DNA of 64,000 bases from positions 1,054,001 through 1,118,000 of the forward strand of contig CBFFRQ010000068.1 of assembly GCA_965644315.1 (NCBI GenBank). The letters are read 5' to 3'. The position numbers and the translations under genes were made by a program. The DNA comes from Caecitellus pseudoparvulus. Its lineage: Eukaryota > Protista > Bigyra: Bicosoecida. Shown one piece after another: positions 18,931 to 40,990 of the stretch. Every line of letters starts with the position of its first letter. The stretch's first letter is position 1. The notes under the pieces are model-generated. The model made no database searches, was not told the origin of the DNA, and saw nothing but the letters and a program-made list of their open reading frames with translations.

Positions 18931-21900
18931 TCACTTTTTGTCTGCTTCATGCTCCTCCTCTTCTTCCACCACAGCCACCATCATGGGGGCTGGGGGCGCG
19001 AGGCGCCGTCTGCCGCCTGGTGGCGGGCCAGGTGCAGCCGCCCCACTGCTGCGGGGTGGCGGCTTGGGTTGGAAGAATGCAGCCCCACCTTCGCCTGCGC
19101 CAGGTGGGTGGCGCGGCGTGGGGACTTCCCCTTGCCGGAGGGTCTGCGCCTCGGGGTCCATTGTCATGGCTTGCATGACCAAGGACCCACGCTTGTTGCG
19201 TGCCCTGTTCTTGACACTAATGGTGTCAATGAGGCTCGCACGCCGCTTGTGGGGTGCTGTGACGGGGGAGTGGTCCTCCTGGTCATCGTCCAGCAGGTCG
19301 CGCCTGGTCATGGTGCGCAACGTCAGCGCCTCCTTTGACGCAGACGCATCCGACACCTTGACCGCATCCAAGGCTTCAGATACAGCTGCGTCATCCACAG
19401 CAGCTTCCAGGCCCAAGCCATGGCTCGGCATGCCTTCGTTGGGGTCTGTCAGCACCATGACCCAGAAATAGAAGCGATGCACGAAGCGGAAGGGGGATAC
19501 CTCGACTGCCTTCCCCAGGTTGAAGGTACCAGCCTGGTGCACCAACACTGCTCGCGCCAAGGCAAGGCAGCGGACGTCCACATCCTGTGGTTCCATTCGC
19601 GTGAAGAAGTCGATGATCTCTGGCTCTTGTACGAAGTCACACACGTACCGCCAGGAGGCCTTCTGGCCCAGCAGTAGGCACATAGCCGAGCCAATCATGG
19701 AGGAAGCAGTGTCCACCGGCTCCTGGCGCCGGAACGCGTTCAAGTCTGCTCGGTCCACATCCAGCAAGCCTCGTCGCACCCATCCCAGTGGAGACCGGCG
19801 AGAAAGCAGCGTCTTGGTCAAGCCCTCCCGCTTCCACATTTTGAGCCGCATGCGAGCACGCCATGCTGCCGAGCGCAGCGCAGCCCGAGATGCGATGGTG
19901 CTGGCGCGGTCCACGACTTTGTTGTTGCTAGCAAGGGCAAAGACCGTAGCCCCCATCACCCGGTGCGGGAACTTGGGTGGCGGGCCGTCGCGGTCCAGCA
20001 CTCGACTACTCTTCCCAGACAGCTTCAGGAAGGAGTGGGCCTTGCGCAGACCACCATCCGAGCGCATGCTTGCTGCACTGCCCTTGCTGGCCAGAGACTT
20101 GCTCCGTTCATCGTCAGAGTGGCCCTCCTCACTGACAGACTGAAGCGCATGGTGCTGCAGAGAAGCACTGGAGGCGCCGTGCTGAGAGCGTGCACGCTCT
20201 CGAGCCAGCTCATTGCGTTCCCGCCTGCGTTCCAGCTTGCGCTCGCGGATGACGCGATCGATGTACTGTACAGAAGACAGCCTCGCAGACCGCGGCAGCG
20301 GAATATCCTGCGCCCTCATGCGTGAGTCAGAGATCAGGGAGACCAGCCACCTCAGCATTTTCGCCAGAACAGTCCCGGTCTGGTACTCCTTTTCATAGTG
20401 CATGGACAGCAGGCGGCGGGCGCCGAGGATGGTGGCGATGTAGTGACGCTTGCGGTCACTCAGGTCTGCTCGGCGGAAGTTCATCATGCGGGCAAGCAAA
20501 TCATCACCCTTCTGCATCAGATCTTGCGCGCTGGACCACTCGGGCACCTTGTCGAAAAGTACACACACGCAAGCACCGAAGCACGCTAGGGGCTGAATGG
20601 TGGAGTCCATGCCTGCCATGATGGCAACGTCTGCTCCTTTGACCGTGGACAGCTGATGCCGGGCCTCTCGGAGCTGCACAGGAGGCTCATCTGGCGTTTT
20701 TGTACGCAGGATGCTAAGCTCCACGTCCTCGTCATCGCTTTCACTGTCAATGACTTCCTCCTCCCGGTGAGATGCCGCGCTGGTGGTCCTCGGAGACTCA
20801 CCACGGGGACTGCCAGCTCGCCGGCGCTCCTTCCTGTCAGCCCGCTGACCAGCGAACAGGCGCCGGAAGTGCTCCAAGTGCTCTGGGGCCAAGGCGTACC
20901 CCTTCTCCGCGAGGACTTCCCCGATGTCCTTCCCATCCGCCGCTTCGGCAGCAGCTGCAGCCGCTGCTGCGGCAGCCGCCTCTGCCGGGTTCTTGTACCC
21001 CATCTCCCGGAAGATCTCCACGATCTCCTTGTCAATGGCTACACCAGCCATGCCCCGCAGATTGGAATCCTCATCTGGCACCCAGTATGCCATGATGAGG
21101 CACCAGTTGTGCAACACTGCAAGCGCGGCGAACGAGGCACCGACGGCCCCTGCCTCAGTGGCCGTGATGCCTTCTTCTTTCTCTTCACCCGCAAAGGCAG
21201 TCTTGCCGGCGGAGGACATATCTGTGTACTCATCGTCGTGAGGACCGGCAGCACTGGCACGCCCGTCCTTGTAGTCCGTGATACCCACTGCCCGCTTGAC
21301 AATTTCCATGGACTTGGCAACATCCAAGGTGTGCTTGGGGTGGCGCCGCAAAATCTCGCGAGCGACCCGGCGTGACAGTGGCGCCAGCATGGAAGGGTGC
21401 ACCATGGAAAGCTTCATGACGAAGCCCTTCTTGCGAATCACTTTTTTGGCCGTGGTCCAGGATGGCTTAGGCACGTTCAAGAGCGTGCACAAGGCGCCTG
21501 CAATGATGATCATGTCTTCTGTCGGCTCTGCCACGCGCGACAGCTCCAGCAGCATGTCCACGGTGAGGCAATCTAGGATGCGCTTCATGTTCTCCATGAG
21601 CTCAGGCGTCACCTTGATCTGAGCAAGTTCTTCCTCATCCACCTCATCTTCTGTCTTCTCCTGCACAGCATCGTCCGAAGAGTCACTCGCTTCAGCAAGC
21701 TCATCGTCGTCGCTGGCGTCTGCTAGCTCACCAGCGTCAGCGACACCAGCGTACTCTCCAACAAGGCCATCCTCCATGCTGTCCAAGCCTTGTAGCACCC
21801 GCTGATGAGCTTCGACGGTCTTCAACTCATGGTGAGGCCGCCAGAAAGAATTGTACAGGCAGTAGTGGTGCAAGAGGTCAAACACAGGATACACAATCTC

Positions 21901-24900
21901 TGGACTTGCCACCAGCACGTCCGGGGCAGCAGTGTCCTTGCTCATAACCTGGTCCCCCGTCTTTCCTTCTGAGTCGCGCCCGGGGGCTTTGGGCACAGGC
22001 GCGGCCTCAGCGTCAGAGCCACTGCCAACGCGTTCTGCGCTTTCTGCTTGATGAAGTCTGGCTGCTCGTTGCGGCGACGTGAAGTGTGCTCTTGCAGGAA
22101 CAGGGCTATCAGACTTTGAGTCACTCGCCGCGGGATCCGCGTCTTCGGAGTGGCTGTTCACAGGAACGCTGGTCAAGATGGCACCGAAACGTGACGCCAG
22201 ATCCTCGTTGTGCAAATTGCACACCCGAGGCAAAGCGATGTCGTGGCGCGGGTGCTTGCGGAGAATTGCACGGGAAGCGCAGCGCAAAGCCGCAGCCAGG
22301 CGCTGGGGCTGGGTCTTGGCCATGGTCTCGCGGAACGCTGGGTTCACAGCCAGCGCACGGCCAGCTTCCCAAGATGGGTGTGGATCACCGTGCAACGTTG
22401 ACAGTGCGCAAGCGACGATCACCATGGCGATTGAGGGAGAATCCGTGTCGAACGCAGCTTCCACTGCCTTGGGATTCAACTTTGAAAGCAAGTCGTGCAG
22501 GAGGTCAAGGTGTGCAGGCGTCACCCACAACGTCTTGTTCTCCGGAAAAACCCCAGACTCTGGTGGAATTTCCTCAAAGTCGTCTTTCACGCCAGCCTCT
22601 TCGTACCGCGCTTCTGAGGTCTGCTTGGCCACGTTTGCCATTGCTTCCAAATCATCTTGATCTCGCTTGCGGGCAAGAGCAGCTGCCTTGCCACGACCAA
22701 GCATGCCCCGGGCTGCAGCTTGGATGATGGTAGCAGCTGCATCTGCCTCGCGCAAAGCGTCGTTCCTCCAGCGCTTCAGGCGATTGGCCAGCTTGCGAGC
22801 GACGTGTCCCCGCCAGGCAGCTTGAATGCGAGAAGCTGCATCGTGCTCCATGGCCGCCTGAAGCTCGGCTTTACGGGCCCTGGCCTCTGCTCTGCGCCGA
22901 GCGTTCTGCGGGCCTTGGTACCCAACCTCTCGCGGGTTCACAACGTCCTTTCGCCCACCTCGTCGCTGTTGGGCTTCCTTCAAAGCCATGCGGCCATATG
23001 GCGAGATGATGGCAGACACTGCATCTTCCTCGTCGCTACTCTCCTCGGAAAGGTGGTCATCGACGCCCCCTGCAAAGTCCAGCGCATCCAGCACAGGCTG
23101 CGCTTCGTGTACGAGGGGAGTCTGCCCTGTTGCCTGCCGGATACTGTCGACGGTGCTGATGGGACCGGTGGCTGCCTCAGATGCCTCATCATCACTCCCA
23201 TCTGGAATAGTCCCGTCCGGATGCACGAACACAGGCTCCAAGCCACCCACTGCATCATCAGCAGCAAGTTGACGAGCCATCGCAGCCTGAAGAACTGCGC
23301 TATCCTTGGGCGGCACCCACTTCACATCAACATGCGCTTCGGCTGCATGCTCGCCCGCTGCACTGCGACCGAATACGTCATCCACTGGTAACCATTGTGG
23401 GTTGTCCGCGACGTCAACTGCATCAGGTACTGCAAGTTGGAGAGAATCATCGTCTTCCTCACGACCCTGCTTAGATTCTTGTGCAGCGCCGTCAGCATCT
23501 GCAAGGTCCTGAACAGTCAAGCCAGTAGCTGAGGCTGCAACATCATCCGCCACAGGCAACCCAGACAATGAACACACCGCCGCCGTGCCCCGTGCCAGCA
23601 GTGACTCCAGAGGCACCAACACCGTGCCCAGCTCACGACCACTCGCGTCCACCACCGCCACCTCCGCCACGGCGTCACGACCACGCACGCCAGACACAGG
23701 CAGCTCCAGGCTCTCGCTCCAGTGCGGCTCACCGTCCGCACCCACATCCACCACACTGCTCGTCACCTCAGACCCCCCCACCCGCACACGCACAGCAGTG
23801 CCCACACACCCCGCGTCACCGCCCGCGCCCACCACCAGGTCCCGCGCCGACATCGGGTCCACACTCACCGTGCCAGCGTGCAGGGACGGGTCCCCGCCCG
23901 ACGACAGCACGTGCTCGCCATCGGGTGCGTACGACACACGGGCCTGCACCTGCCCCGCCGCACGACCACTCCCATCACGCAGATCGTGCCAGGTCCCGTC
24001 AGGACCAGAGTCAGACACCTTCACAGCCGGCGCCGTGCTGCGTGACGCCGCACTGCTCACCGCTGCAGGCACACTCTGCCCGCTGGCAGCCACCACCGCC
24101 GCCGTGCCCCGTGCCAGCAGTGACTCCAGAGGCACCAACACCGTGCCCAGCTCACGACCACTCGCGTCCACCACCGCCACCTCCGCCACGGCGTCACGAC
24201 CACGCACGCCAGACACAGGCAGATCCAGGCTCTCGCTCCAGTGCGGCTCACCGTCCGCACCCACATCCACCACGCTGCTCGTCACCTCAGACCCCCCCAC
24301 TCGCACACGCACAGCAGTGCCCACACCCCCCGCGTCACCGCCCGCGCCCACCACCAGGTCCCGCGCCGACATCGGGTCCACACTCACCGTGCCAGCGTGC
24401 AGGGACGGGTCCCCGCCCGACGACAGCACGTGCTCGCCATCTGGCGCGTACGACACACGGGCCTGCACCTGCCCCGCCGCACGACCACTCCCATCACGCA
24501 GATCGTGCCAGGTCCCGTCAGGACCAGAGTCAGACACCTTCACCGCCGGCGCCGTGCTGCGTGACGCCGCACTGCTCACCGCTGCAGGCACACTCTGCCC
24601 GCTGGCAGCCACCACCGCCGCCGTGCCCCGTGCCAGCAGTGACTCCAGAGGCACCAACACCGTGCCCAGCTCACGACCACTCGCGTCCACCACCGCCACC
24701 TCCGCCACGGCGTCACGACCACGCACGCCAGACACAGGCAGCTCCAGGCTCTCGCTCCAGTGCGGCTCGCCGTCCGCACCCACATCCACCACACTGCTCG
24801 TCACCTCAGACCCCCCCACCCGCACACGCACAGCAGTGCCCACACCCCCCGCGTCACCGCCCACGCCCACCACCAGGTCCCGCGCCGACATCGGGTCCAC

Positions 24901-27900
24901 ACTCACCGTGCCAGCGTGCAGGGACGGGTCCCCGCCCGACGACAGCACGTGCTCGCCATCGGGTGCGTACGACACACGGGCCTGCACCTGCCCCGCCGCA
25001 CGACCACTCCCATCACGCAGATCGTGCCAGGTCCCGTCAGGACCAGAGTCAGACACCTTCACAGCCGGCGCCGTGCTGCGTGACGCCGCACTGCTCACCG
25101 CTGCAGGCACACTCTGGCCGCTGGCAGCCACCACCGCCGCCGTGCCCCGTGCCAGCAGTGACTCCAGAGGCACCAACACCGTGCCCAGCTCACGACCACT
25201 CGCGTCCACCACCGCCACCTCCGCCACGGCGTCACGACCACGCACGCCAGACACAGGCAGATCCAGGCTCTCGCTCCAGTGCGGCTCGCCGTCCGCACCC
25301 ACATCCACCACACTGCTCGTCACCTCAGACCCCCCCACCCGCACACGCACAGCAGTGCCCACACCCCCCGCGTCACCGCCCGCGCCCACCACCAGGTCCC
25401 GCGCCGACATCGGGTCCACACTCACCGTGCCAGCGTGCAGGGACGGGTCCCCGCCCGACGACAGCACGTGCTCGCCATCGGGTGCGTACGACACACGGGC
25501 CTGCACCTGCCCCGCCGCACGACCACTCCCGTCACGCAGATCGTGCCAGGTCCCGTCAGGACCAGAGTCAGACACCTTCACCGCCGGCGCCGTGCTGCGT
25601 GACGCCGCACTGCTCACCGCTGCAGGCACACTCTGCCCGCTGGCAGCCACCACCGCCGCCGTGCCCCGTGCCAGCAGTGACTCCAGAGGCACCAACACCG
25701 TGCCCAGCTCACGACCACTCGCGTCCACCACCGCCACCTCCGCCACGGCGTCACGACCACGCACGCCAGACACAGGCAGCTCCAGGCTCTCGCTCCAGTG
25801 CGGCTCGCCGTCCGCACCCACATCCACCACACTGCTCGTCACCTCAGACCCCCCCACCCGCACACGCACAGCAGTGCCCACACCCCCCGCGTCACCGCCC
25901 ACGCCCACCACCAGGTCCCGCGCCGACATCGGGTCCACACTCACCGTGCCAGCGTGCAGGGACGGGTCCCCGCCCGACGACAGCACGTGCTCGCCATCTG
26001 GCGCGTACGACACACGGGCCTGCACCTGCCCCGCCGCACGACCACTCCCGTCACGCAGATCGTGCCAGGTCCCGTCAGGACCAGAGTCAGACACCTTCAC
26101 CGCCGGCGCCGTGCTGCGTGACGCCGCACTGCTCACCGCTGCAGGCACACTCTGCCCGCTGGCAGCCACCACCGCCGCCGTGCCCCGTGCCAGCAGTGAC
26201 TCCAGAGGCACCAACACCGTGCCCAGCTCACGACCACTCGCGTCCACCACCGCCACCTCCGCCACGGCGTCACGACCACGCACGCCAGACACAGGCAGCT
26301 CCAGGCTCTCGCTCCAGTGCGGCTCGCCGTCCGCACCCACATCCACCACACTGCTCGTCACCTCAGACCCCCCCACTCGCACACGCACAGCAGTGCCCAC
26401 ACACCCCGCGTCACCGCCCACGCCCACCACCAGGTCCCGCGCCGACATCGGGTCCACACTCACCGTGCCAGCGTGCAGGGACGGGTCCCCGCCCGACGAC
26501 AGCACGTGCTCGCCATCGGGTGCGTACGACACACGGGCCTGCACCTGCCCCGCCGCACGACCACTCCCATCACGCAGATCGTGCCAGGTCCCGTCAGGAC
26601 CAGAGTCAGACACCTTCACCGCCGGCGCCGTGCTGCGTGACGCCGCACTGCTCACCGCTGCAGGCACACTCTGCCCGCTGGCAGCCACCACCGCCGCCGT
26701 GCCCCGTGCCAGCAGTGACTCCAGAGGCACCAACACCGTGCCCAGCTCACGACCACTCGCGTCCACCACCGCCACCTCCGCCACGGCGTCACGACCACGC
26801 ACGCCAGACACAGGCAGCTCCAGGCTCTCGCTCCAGTGCGGCTCGCCGTCCGCACCCACATCCACCACACTGCTCGTCACCTCAGACCCCCCCACCCGCA
26901 CACGCACAGCAGTGCCCACACCCCCCGCGTCACCGCCCACGCCCACCACCAGGTCCCGCGCCGACATCGGGTCCACACTCACCGTGCCAGCGTGCAGGGA
27001 CGGGTCCCCGCCCGACGACAGCACGTGCTCGCCATCTGGCGCGTACGACACACGGGCCTGCACCTGCCCCGCCGCACGACCACTCCCATCACGCAGATCG
27101 TGCCAGGTCCCGTCAGGACCAGAGTCAGACACCTTCACCGCCGGCGCCGTGCTGCGTGACGCCGCACTGCTCACCGCTGCAGGCACACTCTGCCCGCTGG
27201 CAGCCACCACCGCCGCCGTGCCCCGTGCCAGCAGTGACTCCAGAGGCACCAACACCGTGCCCAGCTCACGACCACTCGCGTCCACCACCGCCACCTCCGC
27301 CACGGCGTCACGACCACGCACGCCAGACACAGGCAGCTCCAGGCTCTCGCTCCAGTGCGGCTCGCCGTCCGCACCCACATCCACCACACTGCTCGTCACC
27401 TCAGACCCCCCCACCCGCACACGCACAGCAGTGCCCACACCCCCCGCGTCACCGCCCGCGCCCACCACCAGGTCCCGCGCCGACATCGGGTCCACACTCA
27501 CCGTGCCAGCGTGCAGGGACGGGTCCCCGCCCGACGACAGCACGTGCTCGCCATCGGGTGCGTACGACACACGGGCCTGCACCTGCCCCGCCGCACGACC
27601 ACTCCCATCACGCAGATCGTGCCAGGTCCCGTCAGGACCAGAGTCAGACACCTTCACCGCCGGCGCCGTGCTGCGTGACGCCGCACTGCTCACCGCTGAA
27701 GGCACACTCTGCCCGCTGGCAGCCACCACCGCCGCCGTGCCCCGTGCCAGCAGTGACTCCAGAGGCACCAACACCGTGCCCAGCTCACGACCACTCGCGT
27801 CCACCACCGCCACCTCCGCCACGGCGTCACGACCACGCACGCCAGACACAGGCAGCTCCAGGCTCTCGCTCCAGTGCGGCTCACCGTCCGCACCCACATC

Positions 27901-30900
27901 CACCACACTGCTCGTCACCTCAGACCCCCCCACTCGCACACGCACAGCAGTGCCCACACCCCCCGCGTCACCGCCCGCGCCCACCACCAGGTCCCGCGCC
28001 GACATCGGGTCCACACTCACCGTGCCAGCGTGCAGGGACGGGTCCCCGCCCGACGACAGCACGTGCTCGCCATCGGGTGCGTACGACACACGGGCCTGCA
28101 CCTGCCCCGCCGCACGACCACTCCCATCACGCAGATCGTGCCAGGTCCCGTCAGGACCAGAGTCAGACACCTTCACCGCCGGCGCCGTGCTGCGTGACGC
28201 CGCACTGCTCACCGCTGCAGGCACACTCTGGCCGCTGGCAGCCACCACCGCCGCCGTGCCCCGTGCCAGCAGTGACTCCAGAGGCACCAACACCGTGCCC
28301 AGCTCACGACCACTCGCGTCCACCACCGCCACCTCCGCCACGGCGTCACGACCACGCACGCCAGACACAGGCAGCTCCAGGCTCTCGCTCCAGTGCGGCT
28401 CACCGTCCGCACCCACATCCACCACACTGCTCGTCACCTCAGACCCCCCACACGCACACGCACAGCAGTGCCCACACCCCCCGCGTCACCGCCCGCACCC
28501 ACCACCAGGTCCCGCGCCGACATCGGGTCCACACTCACCGTGCCAGCGTGCAGGGACGGGTCCCCGCCCGACGACAGCACGTGCTCGCCATCTGGCGCGT
28601 ACGACACACGGGCCTGCACCTGCCCCGCCGCACGACCACTCCCATCACGCAGATCGTGCCAGGTCCCGTCAGGACCAGAGTCAGACACCTTCACCGCCGG
28701 CGCCGTGCTGCGTGACGCCGCACTGCTCACCGCTGCAGGCACACTCTGCCCGCTGGCAGCCACCACCGCCGCCGTGCCCCGTGCCAGCAGTGACTCCAGA
28801 GGCACCAACACCGTGCCCAGCTCACGACCACTCGCGTCCACCACCGCCACCTCCGCCACGGCGTCACGACCACGCACGCCAGACACAGGCAGATCCAGGC
28901 TCTCGCTCCAGTGCGGCTCACCGTCCGCACCCACATCCACCACACTGCTCGTCACCTCAGACCCCCCCACCCGCACACGCACAGCAGTGCCCACACCCCC
29001 CGCGTCACCGCCCACGCCCACCACCAGGTCCCGCGCCGACATCGGGTCCACACTCACCGTGCCAGCGTGCAGGGACGGGTCCCCGCCCGACGACAGCACG
29101 TGCTCGCCATCTGGCGCGTACGACACACGGGCCTGCACCTGCCCCGCCGCACGACCACTCCCATCACGCAGATCGTGCCAGGTCCCGTCAGGACCAGAGT
29201 CAGACACCTTCACCGCCGGCGCCGTGCTGCGTGACGCCGCACTGCTCACCGCTGAAGGCACACTCTGCCCGCTGGCAGCCACCACCGCCGCCGTGCCCCG
29301 TGCCAGCAGTGACTCCAGAGGCACCAACACCGTGCCCAGCTCACGACCACTCGCGTCCACCACCGCCACCTCCGCCACGGCGTCACGACCACGCACGCCA
29401 GACACAGGCAGATCCAGGCTCTCGCTCCAGTGCGGCTCACCGTCCGCACCCACATCCACCACACTGCTCGTCACCTCAGACCCCCCCACCCGCACACGCA
29501 CAGCAGTGCCCACACCCCCCGCGTCACCGCCCACGCCCACCACCAGGTCCCGCGCCGACATCGGGTCCACTTCCAGCAATCCAAAGAAGTTGGGGTCTTC
29601 TGTGGCATGCAATCGTGTTCTACGGATGTCTGGTGTGTACGAGATGGCACTTTGCAGCTTTCCTGCATAGCGGCCGGACTTGTCGTGCAGGTCGTGCCAT
29701 TTGCCATCTTCACCGCTGTCCGAGACTGTGACGTCTGCGTTCTGTGGAAAAGGAGCTGCTCGCGTTTGGGAAGCTGCTGCTGTGGATGGAGACGCTGCCT
29801 TGGTTGCCACGCTGCGGGGAACCACGCCTCCCAACGCAATAGTAGCCGCCGCTGTTCCAGAGTGCAACAGCTCTTCCAATGGTACAAATGCCGAGCCCAC
29901 ACCGTGACCAGTGGCAGCCGCTCTCCCTGCTGGGCGATGGAACTGGACCTCCAGCAGGGCATCATCATCCACGTGAAGGTCTTGAACGGGGACACGGATA
30001 GAAGACCTGGCTGGCATGCCCGAGCGGTCATCTATGGGGACACGAACCTTCCCACGAGTCCCCGCTATCCCAAAGGTCAAGTAGCTGCCAGGGGGAGGCT
30101 TGGCGTCTCGGCCTGCCATTGACATCTGGGTCAGGGAGGATGGTCTAATGGTCAGGTAGCCTTCGTGCACATGGGGGTGTGCATCGCCTGCGATGACATT
30201 CTTCACATCTGGCGTGTACTCGATGCCAGCACGCATGCGCCCAGCAGTGCTGCCGTCCTTTCTGGATGCGAAGAGAATCCACGGGCCGTCGCGGGTGCGG
30301 CCCAGGTGTGCAGAAACACCTGCCGCTTGGGAAGGGTCTGCCTTGGGGGGCAGGAACCGACCACCGGGGAAGGGCCCTCGAGCTTTCCCGACACGGGGGG
30401 AACGAGCACCCCCGATTCGCGCAATGCGTGCTTGACCTCTGGGCTGAGAGGGGGGCAGCGAGAGCCCGGTCTTCGGGTTACGGTTGAAGTCCAGGCAGTG
30501 CTCAAGCCCTGTTTGCAGCAAGGTGTACAGGGGAATGCGGATGAGACCCATGCGGTCGCCCCCCATTCGGTCGAAGATGTGCAGCTCAACAAAGGTGTGC
30601 TTGCTTAAGGGGGTTCCATCCAGTGGGACACGGATGGGCTCGGTCAGCATGGGCACGCGACGGGTGTCCACGGTCATGGACTGCACCTCTCTCCGGCCAA
30701 GCCGGACAGAGATGAATGCTGACCGAGAGCCGACGATGCCCTTCAGGCCCTTGATGCCATTCAGACTCAGCTGGATGTCACCTTCCATCACAGGGACGAC
30801 TGCCCGCTGCTTCAGCCGGGTGCGTGCACCACGTGCGATACGGAAGCGATCGTACCGTGCGGCGTTTCGGTAGTCTACGCCCACCTGGCGTTGAAACCTG

Positions 30901-31730
30901 TACCGCTTCTGCTTGATGCGAACTTGGCGCAGGCGATACTTGTCGCGTGGGCGGGCGACACGTTTCTGCTTGCCACCATAGATGTGCTTGGCCACAGACA
31001 GCCGTGCGGTGATGAGCTCTTGGGCGCCACGCATGCCTTTGTTGTGCCCGTACCCCAACTTCCGTAGGGTGGCGGGGGTCAGGTTTGGCAGCTCTTTGGT
31101 GCGCAGGGCTTGACTCAGGAGTGTTGCTGAAGAGTCCACCTGCCTCATGTCACGCAGCCTGCCACGGTTTGGGCCACGCCGGTTACCCCAATGCTTCCGG
31201 CCGCTCCGGGCAGCCGGTGCACGGGCACCATGGGCAACCATGGCGCCAGCTGCGGAAAGGGAGCCGCTGGACCGAATCCCAGCGCCAGACGCGGCATGGG
31301 GAACACCTGGCATGGGAGGTCGGACGCCCTCTTCTGCGAAGACGGGCAGGGCAACCGGGGCTGGTGGTGATGTTGGGCAGCGTAACTTCGGCGTTTCTTC
31401 GAGGTGAGGGGGGGGACTTCGTGTGGGCTATGTGAAGCACTCACGGTGATACTTTGACTCGCTGTAGCTCATGTAGGCAGCTTGCTCTCCTAGAAACGCA
31501 TCCAGGCTGTCCGCATCTGTCGCTGAGGAGCCCCCGGACCGCCCGGCCCGGCGTCGTGCACTGGCCATCTGGTGGTTGGCACGTGCTCCGAGCGATTCTG
31601 GCATATGGGAGGAGGAGGGCCGAGAAAATGCATATGGAGCGCCTGGTATCACGCCACAGCACAGGCCACAAGGCCCTGCACGGCATGGGGTGCTTTGCGT
31701 ACGACGAGACACTTCGATGGCATGCATGTC
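18931..31730 (-). CDS. Giant (~4,200 aa) protein: basic N-terminus, ~14 C2-like domains, 2 IQ motifs, 4 dynein-stalk MTBD-like modules; split by a 1-bp frameshift at ~28444-28449; start uncertain
   Basis: ORFs 28434-31313 and 18931-28437 are continuous in repeat register. A phase-1 intron 31444-31334 (GTGAGT..TCGCAG) joins the upstream ORF 31428-31742 in frame. IQAAWRGHVARK and IQAAARGMLGR are present. Confidence 0.85.
23575..29570. repeat. 519-bp (173-aa) coding tandem array, ~11.5 periods with 12 C2-like cores, near-identical
   Basis: Equivalent positions recur at 23722, 24241, 24760, 25279, 25798, 26317, 26836, 27355, 27874, 28393, 28911 and 29430 (spacing 519, once 518). Confidence 0.98.
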
Positions 31731-34131: not shown

Positions 34132-37100
34132 ATGGCAGCATCTTCAGCTGTATCAGTCCGCGATACCCTCCTTGGCCTCTCTGCCAGTGATGCAGATGCC
34201 CGGATTTCGGCGCTGCGCACGCTGGCCAGCCTCTCAACTTCCGCACATGGCCTCACCAAGCTGCTTGCAGACAGCACCTCCTTGCCCCGCATGTGCTTCT
34301 TCGTGGCAGGGTTAGCAGAGAGCCCTGTCTTGGTGGATAAAGAGACGGCGACGCTTTCTCTTTCCATCCTTTGGGCGATGCTACAGAGCGATGGTACGCT
34401 TGCCTGCACGCAGCGCTGGCCCTGGCACAGGGCATACGTAGGCCTCCTCCTCGCAGATTCGCTGGCAAAAGCCATCGCAGCGGAGTGTGGTTCGCGCCCA
34501 ATTATGTTGGCATTGAAGATTTCAGAAGCTGATGCTCAGATTGCCATCCCTGCGTTTCACCTGCTGCGGAGGCTGGACAAGCTCGGTAAGCCCAGCGACC
34601 ATCTTGACCTGCGCTTCTCCTCGCACCGTGCTTTGCCCCGCTCTCGTCCAGAGAAGGGCACGGCTATGACAGCTCGCTTGGAAGGGTGTCTGGACCTCCT
34701 GCTGGAGTGCCTGGCCTTGGAGCCTGCACCACCGGCGCTTGCTATGGAGCTGCACGCTGCTTGCGTACAGCTCCTCGCAGCCTATTGCAAGTCGAACGGT
34801 GAGAGGACCGCCCTGCGTGCGTGGATCAAAGTGCTGCTGTAGTTCCTTATGCTGCTCTCCTTCCCCAGACAACAATATGCGCCTGTTTGTGCGCAAGTAT
34901 GGCATCTCGCAGCTGCTCGAGCTCCTCCCTGCTGCGACGGCTGCAAGTCAGTCACCCCTGCATGGCCTCGCTGCACGCTTCGTCGAAGGGACCTTCCAGC
35001 TATTCGCTGCTGCCTGCAAGAATGAAGCGTACTTGCACGCCCTTCTAGGTGTAGATGGTGCCTGCCAGTCAATCACGTTGGCCTTGGACGCTTGCGCAAT
35101 GTTTCCGCAAGCCGCAAGGTTTGGTTGTACGCTTCTCGCGACTCTCAGCTCACATGACGTGGCATGCGAAGAGCTTTGGGCGGCAAAGGCACCTTCCATG
35201 CTCTGGCGCATCATCCTCGATTACGCGCTGCACGGGGCCCTTGCACCCGGCAGCGGAGCACAACCTGAGCCAGCGTCAGGTCGGGTATGGAACTCTCCAC
35301 CCACTGCAGTCCAAGGCCGGGTGGTCATGAAAGGTGCAACTGGAGCCATGTGGGCGCTGCTATCTTCCCCTCCGCCTTCAGTCGTAGCTGGCTCGGCTCT
35401 GGCAACAGAGGGTGCAGATGTCTGGACGCCCCTCGCGTCGCGGTACAAATTGCCGGCTGCGCTTCCAACTCAGCTGGCAGCCTTGGGCCCGGAAAACGCG
35501 CAGCACTTTTCCCCTGCGAGATTTTCCCACTTCCATTCCTCCACCCTGGCTGGCCCTGGTGGTACGCCGCCCAGCATGACGCACCAACTTTCGCTGCATT
35601 TAGGTGAGTCTGCCGTTCCTTCACCGCTGCCACCAGGCATTCTGATCACGTCAACAACAGGGTCCAAGCAAATGCGTGGGCCAGGTGGCATCAGCTTCAA
35701 TTCTGCCCGTGTGTGGGCGCTGCCTGCTCGCTATTTGCACGCATTGCCAACCACTTTGGATCCGCTGCTGGCGCACTCAGCGACGGCGAGCAGCGTATGG
35801 AGGCGGGAATGCGTGGGCGTAGGGCAGATCTCTGGTTCTGCGAGTCACAGGGGGGCCGTATCATGGCATGCTATTCTCCCTGGTGCATGGAAGACGCTGA
35901 TTCTGCAGCACGCACGCGCACCTGGCCTGCCATCCACTCCGCGCTCCTCAGAGCTTGGGCAGGACAAGGACGGCGGCGACGGCGAGGAGGGGGGTGACCT
36001 CGCCCATGGCTTGGGAAGTAGCGGTGCGCTACTGGCGGCAGTTGTCTCGCGTGCAGCTGTGTCCCATCCAGCTGCAGTGCACGGGGGTGGAAACGTCGGG
36101 CCCGGTGCGCGACCCTTTCCTGACGCGGACTTGACCTCGGCCAAGTCTGCAGCAGCGGCGCTGGCGGATGCAGCGAGCAAGCTGAGCCAAGAACTCCTCA
36201 CAGTGTCATCATTTGTCCCCCGAAGTGCCACTGACACACCCTGCTCTGTCGGGCTGGACGCAGCTGGCACGGACGCGTCCAGCGCGGCGGAGCAAACGGG
36301 GGAGGGAGTGGCAAGTGGTCCCCGGCCGGCAAGCTCCCCTGCTGAGGAGGTTGGAGATTTCGTACCGCCGAGGCTGGCAGTCAGTGATGTGAGAGATGGG
36401 GCCAGTGCCCACCTCGGTGCCGGTGCCCTGTCGCTTGAGGGCGAGGGCATAGTGCAAAGCCTTGAACCTGGCAGCAGTCGAACTGCGGCTTCAAGCATCG
36501 CTTCCGGTAGCCCTGGCTCTGAGCACTCACAGGAGTCAGATCCTGCCGCATCTCTCCCTGTTGTGCACAGTGTTCGTGGCAAGCAGCGTCTTCGTGGCTC
36601 ACGCTCGTCAGGCTCGCTCAAAAGCGCGGGCAAGACGGTTCTTGGCGGCCTGCCGACTGCCGCCAGTGCCCCAATGCCGTCTCCAGCACCAGATGGCCCG
36701 ACTTACCCGGCGTGCTCAGCATTCAAGGCAGAGGAGGTGCCAAGCCCGGCCAGTCCTCCATATGATCCGAGTTGTGAGACGTGGGCCCATGTTCCGCACT
36801 GGTTCCCAGAGCTGCAACTTGACGCCGCAGTGGACGCATTTGCACGCTTAGCCTGGCGAGACGGAGAGCAGAATGCTGCGGCTTGGGCACATGCCTTGGC
36901 ATCTGCCTCACCTGCGTCGGACACAAAGCCGGGCTGCCTCATGTCCTTCCTGTGGCAGAACTTTCCTCACCTTGCGCCAGTGGACGCTGCAGAGAGCCTT
37001 TTCGCCGAGGGGGGCCAGTCTCCAACACAATGGGCCTGGCACTGTCTCCCGGGACCGCGCAGCACACCCGTGCTGCTTCCCGCAGTGGTGGCGGATGTCA

Positions 37101-40100
37101 CCATCCCTGACAGCGAACAGGTAGCAGCACCCCTTGGCGCGCCTCTGCCCGCGTGGGGCACTCAAGTCACCCAGCCACCTGCATTTCCAAGCCCACACGA
37201 AGTGCCACGTTTTCCTCCGCATGTCTTCTTGACCCCCAGTGGCATCGCCACCACGCGCGCTTGGACTCTGCGGGCTTCCCAGATTCCGTCAGTGCTGCAA
37301 GCTGGCCCCCCTCCACCCTTGACCCTGGAGCACATGGTGCCTGTCGCTCAAGAGCAACGACAAGTCTTGGGGCAACGCCTAATGCTCAGATCTGTGGCCC
37401 GCATCGTCAAGGCCCTCGGGTTGGCAGGCATGGTGGCGCCGCCGACTGGGCAGTCTGAGCACGTGGTGTACAACGTTTACGGGGCTGAGGAGGGCACAGG
37501 GGCTTGCACGGTTGACTTGCCGGTGGGTCCTTTGGCCCCCGCCATCCCCACGCAGGCATGGGCCGGGGTGTGTGCCGCGTATGCAACTCAGATCTACGAC
37601 ACAGAGTTGGGGCCAGAGATCAGTCCCCCCTTGCCTCTCTCGCGGCTGGGGGTCGCGATGGTGCAGGGGTCACCCCCCGCATCGGGCGGGCAGAGAGGAC
37701 AGGCCGTGGCTGGTGACGAGGACGACGATGAAGATGATGAGGACGATGAAGCGGGGCGTGGTGAGGGGGGAGGTGGGGGGAGCCGCGGCGGGGGGATAGG
37801 CAAGGGCTTGGAGGCCGGGGAGGAGGAGGAGGAGTATGCGTCTGCCCCTGAGGATGTCCAGGACGAAGAAGGGCGAGATGACTCTGGGGCGGTTACGCTG
37901 TCCCCTGTGCCGCCGCGGCAGGGCGTCGTCAGCCCAGGTAGCCTGCTGGCGTCGTCCGGCCGCGAGCCGACACAGGGCAGCGCAAGCATGCCGGGCGACG
38001 AGCTGGAGGCGTTTCCCCGGCCGCAGTATGAGACTGATGAAGCCACGCTTGGTCGGGCCATTGCCGTGGATATCTCATCCATCACAGCAGCAGATTCGAC
38101 TGCGCAGGAGCCTTGGCCAGCCTGCCTCCATTTTGAGTCGCGATTTGAGAGTGGAAACCTCCGCTCAGCAACGCGAGTCGGCCCGCGAGAGTATGAACTC
38201 GCCCTTGAGCCAGACACAAACACCTGCCGACACACACAGTGGTTCTTTTTTGCGGTGTCGGGCATGGAAACCGAGTCACAGCCAGACTCCATGTGGCGGG
38301 GGCAAGATGTGCAGCCCGTGTACACGTTCCACCTGGTGAACTTGGAGAAGACAGATTCCTCGTATAACCATGGCATGCGCCCGGTTGTCTTCTTCGTCGG
38401 TGAGGACGACACGACGTCATCGGTGCCGCTGTGGGAGGCATGGGAACAGCGGGGGGACACTGCGGCCAGCGAGCTGGCCGGGCGCTTCCCCATCCTGCAG
38501 AGCAGCAGGCGTTTGTGGTTGCCGCCCATTCCAGGCGCTGGCTGGCGTCGAGCTGGGGAAGGCATCGTGTACTACCAAAACCACTACAGCAAGGTGAAGA
38601 AGATGCCGATATTGAGCCGTGTTGAGCTGCCTGGCAAGGGCGTGGATGAGGGGGAAGTGGACGAAGATGCAGAGGACGAAGACGACGAGGAAGGTGACAG
38701 CGACGGGGCAGAGGGGCCTGTCTTGGCCAAGGCAGGCGATGCCCCGGTCTCCCGGCTCTACACTGAGACGTTCAACATCACCTTCCCTGCGGGGACGAAG
38801 GCTGCCTTCCTCGCGTACTGCTTCCCCTACACCTACACTGACTTGAGTTTGGACATTTGCAGGTGGAGGTGGCGGTGTGAGCGTGTGTCCGGGGGCCAGA
38901 CAGTGGGGATCACAGAGCTTGCACATCCCCCCATGCCAGACTGCTCCGATTCTGGCGCATCGCCCTCCACAGCACAGCTGCAGGAGCGCCAAGACGGGCC
39001 GTGTGCTCTGGCTAGCCACCTTAGGCACGATCCTGTGCACAGCAGCTCCGGCAAGGGCCGCTTCCCGGGAGCCTTGGGTTCTGCCGGCACACATGTGCCG
39101 CTGGGGTCCACCTTCTCTAGCAAGATTATGGTTGAGAGCATGCTTTGTCGAAGCATCAGTGGAAACGCCTTGCCTCTCCTGACCATCACTGACTTCGGGG
39201 ATGGGGTAGCTGGCGCAGCTAGCGGCGCGGTACCTGTCATTCCCACTCCTGCCGCACCTATCCCTGCCGCAGGCGCCCCACTGCATCTGCGCCCAGTCGT
39301 GGTGCTTTCAGGGCGTGTGCACCCCGGCGAGACCAATGCCTCGTGGATGATGCGGGGGGTGCTGGATATGCTGACGTCTTCGTCCCCAATTGCCGCGGCA
39401 TCCCGCTCGCGGGCTGTGTGGAAGGTCGTGCCCTTCCTGAACCCCGACGGAGTTATCAATGGGCATCACCGCACCAACCTTGCCGGGGTGGACCTGAACC
39501 GGCACTGGTCCACGCCTACCCCGTCTGTTGCCCCCACCGTGTGGCACTTGAAGCGACTTCTTCATACAGTGCAGCGCCGCGGCCGATTGGTCCTGTACTG
39601 TGACTTCCATGGGCACTCGAGGCGGAAGAACATCTTCACCTTTGGCTGTGAGGTTTCCGTTAGCACTGCTGGGCCGGCAGCTGCTAAGGACGCCGCTGGC
39701 TGGTCTGCTTGGGTGCAGAAGGTGTTCCCTGCCCTCCTGGCTGCACGGGCTGACGACTTTGCCATGAAGAACTGCGCGTTCAAGGTGCAAAAGAGCAAGG
39801 CCAGCTGCGCCCGCGTGGCTGCGTGGCGGGATACGCCCATGGTGAACTCTTTCACGATTGAGGCATCCTTCGCAGGAGCCGACCAAGGCGCACACGGAGG
39901 CTGCCACTTCTCCACACAGCACTATGAGGAAATGGGGCATCACTTCGTTGCTTCTATGCACGACCTCATGGCTTTGTACCATGACCTACCCATCGCAGGG
40001 TCTGTGGCTGGCGTGGGGCCACAACAGCCCACGGCAGGCTCGGCTTTGGAGGCGCTGGTGTCACTGCCCACTGAAGCTGCCCGGACAGGAGCCTCCTTCG

Positions 40101-40990
40101 CCAAGGCATGTGTTCCTCCACCCCACGTCCTGCGGGGCAGTGCCCCGTGCCCCCCTAGCGCCAGCTGCGCGTCCCTTCTGAAGCACCTGAGCCTGCCGAA
40201 CAGTGCGCTGGCTGCCCTGGCTGGGACTGCCCCCATGTCAGCTCTGGCGGCAGCCTTCGGTCCCAGCCTGGCAACGTGGCCGCTCTTCCTGCCTAGCTTG
40301 CCTGAAGCCGATGTGCAGGTCATGTGCTCCACTGCTGCCTCGGTAACGGCGAGCCTCGCTGGCTGGTGTGAGGGCGCGGAAGACATGGGTGCTGGCGCGT
40401 TTCCCTGGCCGCTGGTCCTGGCACCCTTCAAGAATCTTCCCTTGGGGGGCGTGGCCGACTTGATGGCTACACTGAAGCTCGCACCCAAGTCCCGTGGCGC
40501 ACAAGCAGCTGCGGAGGAAAACCCTGCCCAAGGTGAAGCAGCCAGCACTCTCTCCCGGCGAAGCTCCAAAGCTGCACTACCCAAGGCACGCTCGTCGGCG
40601 AGCATGCGCAGTGCAGGTGCGCTTTCGGGCACCGGGGGTAGCACTCCGCGAAGTTTAGGAGTCGGTGGCGAGCTGGCGGGCCTTGTGTCATCCTGGCTGC
40701 GCGCGGGGGCGCCTAGTGCCAAGACTCCGCTGTTGATGCCCACAGCCATGGCCCGTGCCATCAAGACTTGTGCCGGCCTTGCCAAGGCGGCCGCCCAGGC
40801 TGCAAAGAAGAGTGTAGGCAGGAAGAAGCGTGTGGCCAAGAAGGGCGCAGGACGGACACGGCAGGCCCGGCGAACGCCCACAAAGCGCCCCACCACGGGT
40901 GGCAAAGGCAAGAAAGGCACCACTAAAAAGAAGAAACCCGTGCCAAGCGGCACGCCCAAGAAGCGGGTCGCCGCAGGAGCCGGTACGTAG
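34132..40990 (+). CDS. Cytosolic carboxypeptidase (M14D, CCP1/Nna1-like tubulin deglutamylase) with N-terminal ARM-like region; introns in the 5' part
   Basis: FESRFESGNL, HTQWFFF, AYCFPYTYTDL, RVHPGE, PFLNPDGV, DLNRHW, DFHGHS and SFTIEAS give the complete zinc and catalytic set; Lys/Arg-rich tail. Confidence 0.93.

Follow-up and report, generated by a model that had tools for sequence, protein, structure and literature searches.

Four anciently duplicated, motorless homologues of the dynein microtubule-binding domain in a giant protein of Caecitellus pseudoparvulus

Can the domain by which dynein holds a microtubule exist without the motor that carries it, and if so, what would it do there? 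In dynein, the microtubule-binding domain (MTBD) docks at the tubulin intradimer interface with an affinity that depends on how the stalk helices slide (PMC6629372). The question is raised by a 64,000-nucleotide stretch of the genome of the bicosoecid Caecitellus pseudoparvulus (contig CBFFRQ010000068.1 of assembly GCA_965644315.1, positions 1,054,001 to 1,118,000), which we call the window, and in which a first-pass annotation made from the letters alone had proposed four stand-alone copies of an MTBD-like module. All four lie, without interruption, inside one minus-strand open reading frame (ORF) of 3168 codons, whose residues we number from the codon at 28437 (Table 1); the domain comprises six helices (H1 to H6) and roughly 115 residues. 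We show here that the four segments are free-standing homologues of the dynein MTBD, covering helices H1 to H6, and that they were duplicated anciently. We then consider whether they act as microtubule anchors, a reading to which we assign a probability of about 60%.

The homology is carried by comparisons between profiles. When the module alignment A1 (48 rows of copies and relatives, 127 positions) was searched as a profile against the PDB, 82 sequences were matched at E≤1, and the best 60 of these 82 were all dynein heavy chains, led by DNAH6 with an E-value of 1.6e-17 over positions 4 to 114 of 127. For a second profile, we took 19 dynein stalks from the window's own genome and used their MTBD part. 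In hhalign, the alignment of the module profile with these own-genome dynein MTBDs spanned 116 columns, H1 through H6, with a probability of 99.1% (E 9e-19); the probability was 98.4% (E 4.9e-15) after six highly dynein-like copies from a relative, P0017, were left out, and 0.3% for a reversed-sequence control. Each copy type also aligned with the dynein MTBD by itself, at 90% for copy 1 (E 1.7e-6), 96.9% for copy 2 (E 1.3e-10), 97.6% for copy 3 (E 3.2e-12), and 96.3% for copy 4 (E 2e-9). As a hidden Markov model (HMM), the own-genome dynein profile matched copies 2 and 3 in register and gave the region 32 bits. The best of 2000 shuffles reached 8.2 bits, and all other ORFs of the window stayed at 3 bits or less with this profile.

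Predicted structures point the same way. We modeled copies 2 and 3, the latter with AlphaFold2 without templates from alignment A1. The copy 3 model has a predicted local distance difference test score (pLDDT) of 96.2 and a predicted template-modeling score (pTM) of 0.89. Every one of its top 37 Foldseek matches in the PDB is a dynein MTBD: the best 26 have probabilities of at least 0.92, template-modeling (TM) scores of 0.59 to 0.76, and root mean square deviations (rmsd) of 2.1 to 5.7 Å over 115 to 140 columns, and the remaining 11 have TM scores of 0.53 to 0.70. Compared with representative structures in VIA-align, the copy 3 model scored highest with five dynein MTBD structures (Z 14.2, 13.2, 12.7, 12.3, and 11.6), followed by three chains of microtubule assemblies (Z 8.6, 8.3, and 7.0) and by the low-resolution dynein MTBD-tubulin models 3j6p_D (Z 6.7) and 3j1t_A (Z 6.1); unrelated folds reached Z 4.7 at most. 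The copy 2 model was built with its insertion from alignment A2, which has eight paralog or ortholog rows. Its core has a pLDDT above 90, the insertion (model residues 117 to 161) falls below 50 and is disordered, and the last helix recovers to about 80 to 93 and packs into the fold in the model. With dynein MTBDs this model gave Z 7.9 to 12.1 over model residues 2 to 191, the post-insertion helix included, and the next fold gave Z 3.4. In both models a helix of 9 to 12 residues precedes H1 and the chain exits directly after H6. As modeled, then, copies 2 and 3 share the six-helix topology of the dynein MTBD. Two of the microtubule-assembly chains that match copy 3 by fold, 9fqr_Xl from the bovine sperm axoneme (Z 8.6) and 9e5c_2e from the Trypanosoma brucei axoneme (Z 7.0), are absent from the sequence searches; the former could be a dynein whose gene model is truncated.

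Could this likeness be that of any generic small helical bundle, arisen by chance or convergence? Some results lean that way. A PDB search with a single sequence gave marginal matches only (E ~0.8 to yeast dynein MTBDs), unconvincing alone, and middling structural Z values are common for small helical bundles. Moreover, the Pfam dynein stalk family PF12777, a model that spans the whole 344-position stalk, matched neither the region nor any single copy at E≤10, so the Pfam check that had been suggested for the copies came out negative for the window. It came out positive for P0017, which lies above the PF12777 threshold (92 bits versus a cut-off of 24) in four stretches that cover positions 101 to 227 of 344, the MTBD part only, and which thereby links the family to Pfam transitively. 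With profile E-values between 1e-17 and 1e-19 across the full domain and in register, both controls far below the matches, and dynein MTBDs at Z 11.6 to 14.2 compared with 4.7 for unrelated folds, we consider a chance or convergent origin highly improbable and effectively refuted. The similarity to the dynein MTBD that had been proposed in profile and in structure thus stands.

What surrounds the copies indicates that the domain is here separated from its motor. Pfam recognized no AAA+ ring, linker, or tail of dynein in the ORF or its paralogs; in the C-terminal 1456 residues of the ORF, IQ motifs were the sole Pfam match, and in the N-terminal parts of the paralogs Pfam found one IQ motif only. 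No coiled-coil stalk (CC1/CC2) appears in the models of copies 2 and 3, and the copies are flanked by low-complexity linkers. Because four old, diverged copies occur with neither motor nor stalk attached, the MTBD can exist as a free-standing module.

The copies are old. Iterated HMMs started from any single copy converged on the same four sites (domain scores of 63 to 136 bits, with 1 to 6 copies per relative), and our boundaries fall within about 20 nucleotides of those first proposed. Identity among the copies is 12 to 15% (to copy 3), which bears out the strong divergence that had been noted. In a tree of MTBDs, the copies cluster by position across paralogs, with Shimodaira-Hasegawa-like approximate likelihood ratio test (SH-aLRT) values of 99 for the copy 4 type, 91 for the copy 3 type, and 86 for the copy 1/2 type; therefore, the array predates the gene duplications, and the early date suggested for the multiplication holds. 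Constraining all copies of the window gene's family to one clade was not rejected (approximately unbiased test, p-AU 0.71), and a long branch divides this family from all dynein MTBDs. With no more than 128 columns and numerous forks left open, the tree does not resolve the dynein class from which the modules came.

Copies 1 and 2 had also been said to carry long insertions before the last helix, and we find this for copy 2 from the model and for copy 1 from paralog conservation only. In copy 1, a low-complexity insertion of about 90 residues is followed by the last helix VYPVFDLLHHYCLYNSFWRP; in copy 2, a disordered insertion of about 45 residues is followed by ALAVLHNWCLIMAYWVP. In every paralog, the insertion-bearing copies 1 and 2 show a conserved helix, LHxWCLLMAxWxP, after a variable low-complexity stretch, and paralogs A and B and the relative P0009 all conserve the tryptophan-containing helix after the copy 1 insertion. 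A proline follows the last helix in both copies.

Is the gene real? A decayed dynein fragment, a pseudogene, or a misassembly would have to be considered, since a change of frame at 28434-28452 splits the giant reading frame inside an array of near-identical 173-residue units, a kind of sequence that is prone to assembly error. There, the upstream frame reads ...RVGGLR* and the downstream frame ...RVGGSEVTSS, and the change is either a genuine frameshift or an assembly error among near-identical repeats. The upstream ORF (28434-31313, 960 codons) ends within the same array in another frame; for this reason, the full gene is probably about 4100 codons long, the two ORFs being joined over the frameshift. 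The ORF that holds all four copies is nevertheless intact over its 3168 codons. Two independent metagenome contigs, L040 and L041, which begin within the repeat array downstream of the frame-change site, carry the same last 1736 codons in the same gene neighborhood without a single indel. Relative to these contigs there are 54 synonymous and 17 non-synonymous differences, with a ratio of non-synonymous to synonymous rates (dN/dS, omega) of 0.10, or 0.07 for the modules pooled; the window gene is under purifying selection. Together with the lack of AAA+ remnants and a module order that is common to four paralogs, these data make an artefact extremely improbable.

The four paralogs in this genome are 1745 to 3396 codons long and have the same modules in the same order. 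Searching the whole genome with A1 located 19 MTBD-like copies in the five family genes. Among 1.84 billion protein representatives, an exhaustive phmmer search found only 25 proteins, no dynein among them, and most belong to the same organism or to close kin. A word-indexed homology search with residues 1900 to 3168 found no match, its candidate list having probably been swamped by low-complexity words, and the same kind of search with P0017 returned only P0017 itself. IQ motifs recur in the relatives P0016, P0021, P0022, and P0009 and in paralog B, and P0022 has a weak C2 match. Two of the relatives, P0001 (CAE7520818.1) and P0002 (CAE7277001.1), are 99% identical to the window gene and to paralog A, respectively, and are filed as "unnamed protein product [Symbiodinium sp. 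KB8]". Because the genome analyzed here measures only 30.6 Mb and its HSP90 has its closest named sequences in oomycetes and diatoms (73 to 75% identity), these entries are probably a stramenopile contaminant of that dinoflagellate assembly. Another relative, P0008 (954 residues, from a metagenome), consists of four identical 257-residue repeats with one MTBD-like module each; here the module was multiplied in tandem recently, unlike the ancient multiplication in the window.

The module is not confined to this family. Besides the 19 family copies and the dynein heavy chains, of which the genome has at least 20, the genome-wide A1 search recovered three further non-dynein genes with one domain each, in which Pfam recognized no domain. 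The first is a 494-codon ORF (G000:C64:110665-111003; ORF 1101-2582 of contig L046) with an acidic low-complexity N-terminal half, an MTBD-like domain at residues 356 to 468 that scores 43.7 bits with the module profile and 22 with the dynein MTBD profile, and, at its C terminus, CIIM, a CaaX box; we regard it as a candidate prenylated microtubule anchor. The second (G000:C43:566170-566502; L047) would encode a mini-protein (179 codons at most) that has one MTBD-like domain and a poly-Glu tail. In the third (G000:C96:306925-307281; L048) one MTBD-like domain lies in an open frame of 2302 residues, of which the 1446 examined include a coiled-coil N-terminal part. At least eight non-dynein genes of the genome, the five family genes and three more, thus carry the domain, and the free-standing MTBD is a recurrent building block in this genome. 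In two, perhaps three, cases it adjoins a putative membrane-anchoring device.

In the window gene, that putative device is the repeat array. From N to C terminus, the 3168-residue part consists of the 173-residue unit array, an acidic linker, two IQ motifs, the four MTBD-like copies, and a Pro/Arg-rich tail; the linkers between copies 1 and 2 and between copies 2 and 3 are acidic, and the one that joins copies 3 and 4 has a strongly basic isoelectric point (pI) of 11.6. The IQ motifs match Pfam PF00612 in two stretches (E 3.8e-8, 32.9 bits versus a cut-off of 20.3). The array has a period of 173 residues, with nine full units and partial ones in the lower ORF and more, older copies upstream. 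A C2 array had been proposed here. The units are near-identical, and their assignment to C2 falls below every curated threshold. In a PDB profile search, all seven marginal matches of the unit are C2 domains, namely of dysferlin, MCTP2, and E-Syt2 (E 0.4 to 1.4).

With this architecture in hand, we propose that the four motorless, stalk-less MTBD homologues, set on linkers in the C-terminal third of a scaffold, act as microtubule anchors, at the rough probability of 60% given above. H1, H3, and H6 form the contact face of the dynein MTBD, and each module would dock on the tubulin lattice through this face, much as the dynein stalk tip does. In the absence of a stalk registry that could switch the affinity, docking would be constitutive. 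On flexible disordered linkers, four modules could provide avidity or cross-link neighboring microtubules, while the IQ motifs could recruit a calmodulin-type light chain and so bring Ca2+ control, and the C2-like array could connect the microtubule with another surface, probably a membrane; the membrane-tether role and the Ca2+ control are speculative. One hint at function is that putative membrane-anchoring devices accompany the domain more than once: the weakly C2-like array here, the weak C2 match in P0022, and the CaaX box of the single-domain gene. The first-pass suggestion to map basic residues on the tubulin-facing helices gave a divided answer for H3. Of the basic pair in the dynein consensus W..AKR, copy 2 (WTTAKK) keeps both residues and copy 1 (WEAGRA) one. 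Copy 2, the most basic of the four (pI 10.0), is therefore the strongest candidate for microtubule binding, as we infer it from sequence and fold.

Several observations weigh against this proposal, in addition to the missing PF12777 match. Neither copy 3 (WSSAQD) nor copy 4 (WRYVCD) retains the H3 basic pair, and copy 4 is acidic (pI 6.1), so that not all four copies need bind tubulin; copies 3 and 4 are possibly specialized. The AlphaFold models are slightly closer to the low-affinity crystal forms than to the microtubule-bound ones, which may be training bias only. For the array that would reach the membrane, the Pfam C2 match of the 173-residue unit (E 0.007, 17 bits) lies below the cut-off of 22. 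A chain of the Toxoplasma gondii intraconoidal microtubule that has the same fold as copy 3, 9YA2 chain L, shows no sequence similarity detected by the module profiles. Insertions in the MTBD of the non-motile dynein DNAHX have been argued to impair binding (PMC11785096).

On such grounds one might hold that the modules derive from the MTBD and have changed their function, binding another partner (a different cytoskeletal protein or a membrane protein, for instance) or each other, or that only copy 2, perhaps with copy 1, still binds tubulin and copies 3 and 4 serve some other purpose. The residue losses in copies 3 and 4 fit this alternative, as do the long branch between the family and all dynein MTBDs, the weakening proposed for insertions in DNAHX, and the fact that copies only 12 to 15% identical are each conserved by type across paralogs, which suggests position-specific roles. 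However, the H1, H2, H3, and H6 signature of dynein is conserved family-wide, with the basic pair after the H3 tryptophan kept by half or more of the family's modules; the same fold sits on a microtubule surface in a non-dynein chain (PMC12819142); and no datum suggests an alternative partner. We therefore regard a change of function as unlikely, if well above negligible, and retain microtubule anchoring as the preferred reading.

The features of the ORF are collected in Table 1. The segment that follows copy 2 has an invariant poly-Ala core and recurs in every paralog as well as in P0004 and P0009; it had no match in the PDB or Pfam.

Table 1. Coordinates of the 3168-codon ORF and the features within it (window positions).
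Feature	Position	Strand	Description
Main ORF, 3168 codons	18931..28437	-	Intact frame; dN/dS 0.10, 0 indels over 1736 codons versus two metagenome contigs
173-residue unit array	23368..28437	-	Near-identical units, weakly C2-like; continues in the upstream ORF to ~30806
Two IQ calmodulin-binding motifs	22684..22845	-	Residues ~1865-1882 and ~1899-1918; ~50 residues upstream of copy 1
MTBD-like copy 1	21829..22530	-	Residues 1970-2203; core H1-H5 1977-2091, insertion ~2092-2180, last helix ~2181-2203
MTBD-like copy 2	21073..21618	-	Residues 2274-2455; core to 2387, disordered insertion ~2388-2431, last helix ~2432-2455
Conserved segment right after copy 2, ~70-85 residues	20800..21057	-	EIVEIFREMGYKNPAEAAAAAAAAAAAE...GYALAPEHLEHF; alignment A4, 57% mean column identity
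MTBD-like copy 3	20323..20673	-	Residues 2589-2705; compact, without insertion
MTBD-like copy 4	19438..19788	-	Residues 2884-3000; compact, acidic, pI 6.1

The window as a whole has a GC content of about 60% and carries long, intron-poor genes on both strands, with the strands alternating. GC content and long ORFs might have suggested a trypanosomatid, an origin that we reject in view of this alternation and of the HSP90 identities to oomycetes and diatoms, which agree instead with a stramenopile-type flagellate. A neighboring plus-strand ORF of 2083 codons (34739-40990) encodes a cytosolic carboxypeptidase (CCP), with a Peptidase_M14 domain and the CCP N-terminal domain. The cytosolic carboxypeptidase family includes tubulin deglutamylases. 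This ORF and the giant gene, whose probable start is at 31313, are about 3.4 kb apart, so that a second microtubule-related gene is found nearby.

What is new here is not the domain, which is known, but its free-standing, multiplied, and motorless use together with IQ motifs and C2-like units. The literature that we searched treats the domain as belonging to the tip of the dynein stalk alone, and we found in it no description of a dynein-type MTBD outside dynein heavy chains; our searches returned only papers on TTLL11, where "MTBD" has another sense, and mentions of PF12777 in genome surveys. A wider view would make the dynein MTBD an autonomous, portable microtubule-docking domain with a hidden motorless family, joined in this organism on at least three occasions to putative membrane anchors (a C2-like array, a CaaX box, and possibly others). 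We hold this view tentatively, and on balance it is doubtful. If it were true, these proteins would constitute membrane-to-microtubule tethers of a new class, Toxoplasma ICMAP2 and still-unnamed axonemal proteins might be anchored to microtubules by the same fold, and, at the extreme, the family could descend from a domain of a pre-dynein microtubule-associated protein (MAP) that was inserted into the dynein stalk. The locus bears on how dynein gained its MTBD. As a natural set of stalk-free MTBDs, it also offers a way to separate the intrinsic affinity of the domain from that imposed by stalk registry. Furthermore, it suggests that stramenopile-like protists, for whose microtubular roots and cortical arrays few linkers are known, have a MAP or tether of a new kind, and it gives a handle for annotating orphan microtubule-bound densities such as the ICMAP2 globular domain in Toxoplasma.

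How, then, does the window protein compare with known systems? The MTBDs of dynein heavy chains (PDB 3ERR, 6RZB, 8I3J, 2RR7, and 6KJO) have the same six-helix fold and H1-to-H6 order as the window copies and share with them, in register, the signature L..A..AL..L...D..E, P..V..V..AVC.LL, W..AKR.L....FL..L, S.AA..L..WV. Unlike dynein, the window copies have no antiparallel coiled-coil stalk, AAA+ ring, or "flap" and stand four in tandem on disordered linkers; in copies 1 and 2, H5 and H6 are set apart by long disordered insertions, the H3 pair is missing from copies 3 and 4, and no affinity switch by helix sliding is obvious. The nearest case in the literature is that of DNAHX/DNHD1, dynein-derived proteins that no longer act as motors and whose MTBD tolerates disordered insertions before H3 and in H5; these proteins keep the whole heavy chain with tail, AAA+ ring, and stalk, whereas the window protein has the MTBD alone, multiplied (PMC11785096).

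Two further proteins carry the domain, or its fold, outside a dynein motor. P0017 (894 residues, metagenome JGI 3300005281), which was found by sequence at E 5e-6, is like the window protein motorless, with six tandem MTBD domains. It differs in being more dynein-like, grouping with dynein MTBDs (SH-aLRT 99), and in having short linkers and neither IQ motifs nor insertions, and it may represent an independent escape of the domain. The second, 9YA2 chain L, is not a dynein and matches the fold of copy 3 with Z 8.3 and an rmsd of 3.6 Å over 117 of 130 aligned residues. Its 162 modeled residues are numbered 1211 to 1457, which implies an internal unresolved insertion as in window copies 1 and 2; judging by length and numbering, it is probably the globular domain of ICMAP2 (TGME49_224700). 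ICMAP2, a protein of 1678 residues of which ~10% is resolved, places a globular domain on the outer surface of ICMT-1 every 8 nm, and its loss separates the two microtubules (PMC12819142). It has been described as having "no recognizable domain" (PMC10774369). Unlike the window protein, chain L is a single domain, and it reportedly lies between protofilaments.

In its layout, finally, the window protein resembles proteins of other kinds. Multi-C2 tethers (extended synaptotagmins, dysferlin and other ferlins, and MCTPs) and tandem-repeat MAPs (tau/MAP2/MAP4 and doublecortin) set weak modules on flexible linkers and so gain avidity; none of them is known to use a dynein-type MTBD. The window protein shares this avidity layout with both groups, and the marginal matches of its 173-residue unit are to the C2 domains of such tethers.

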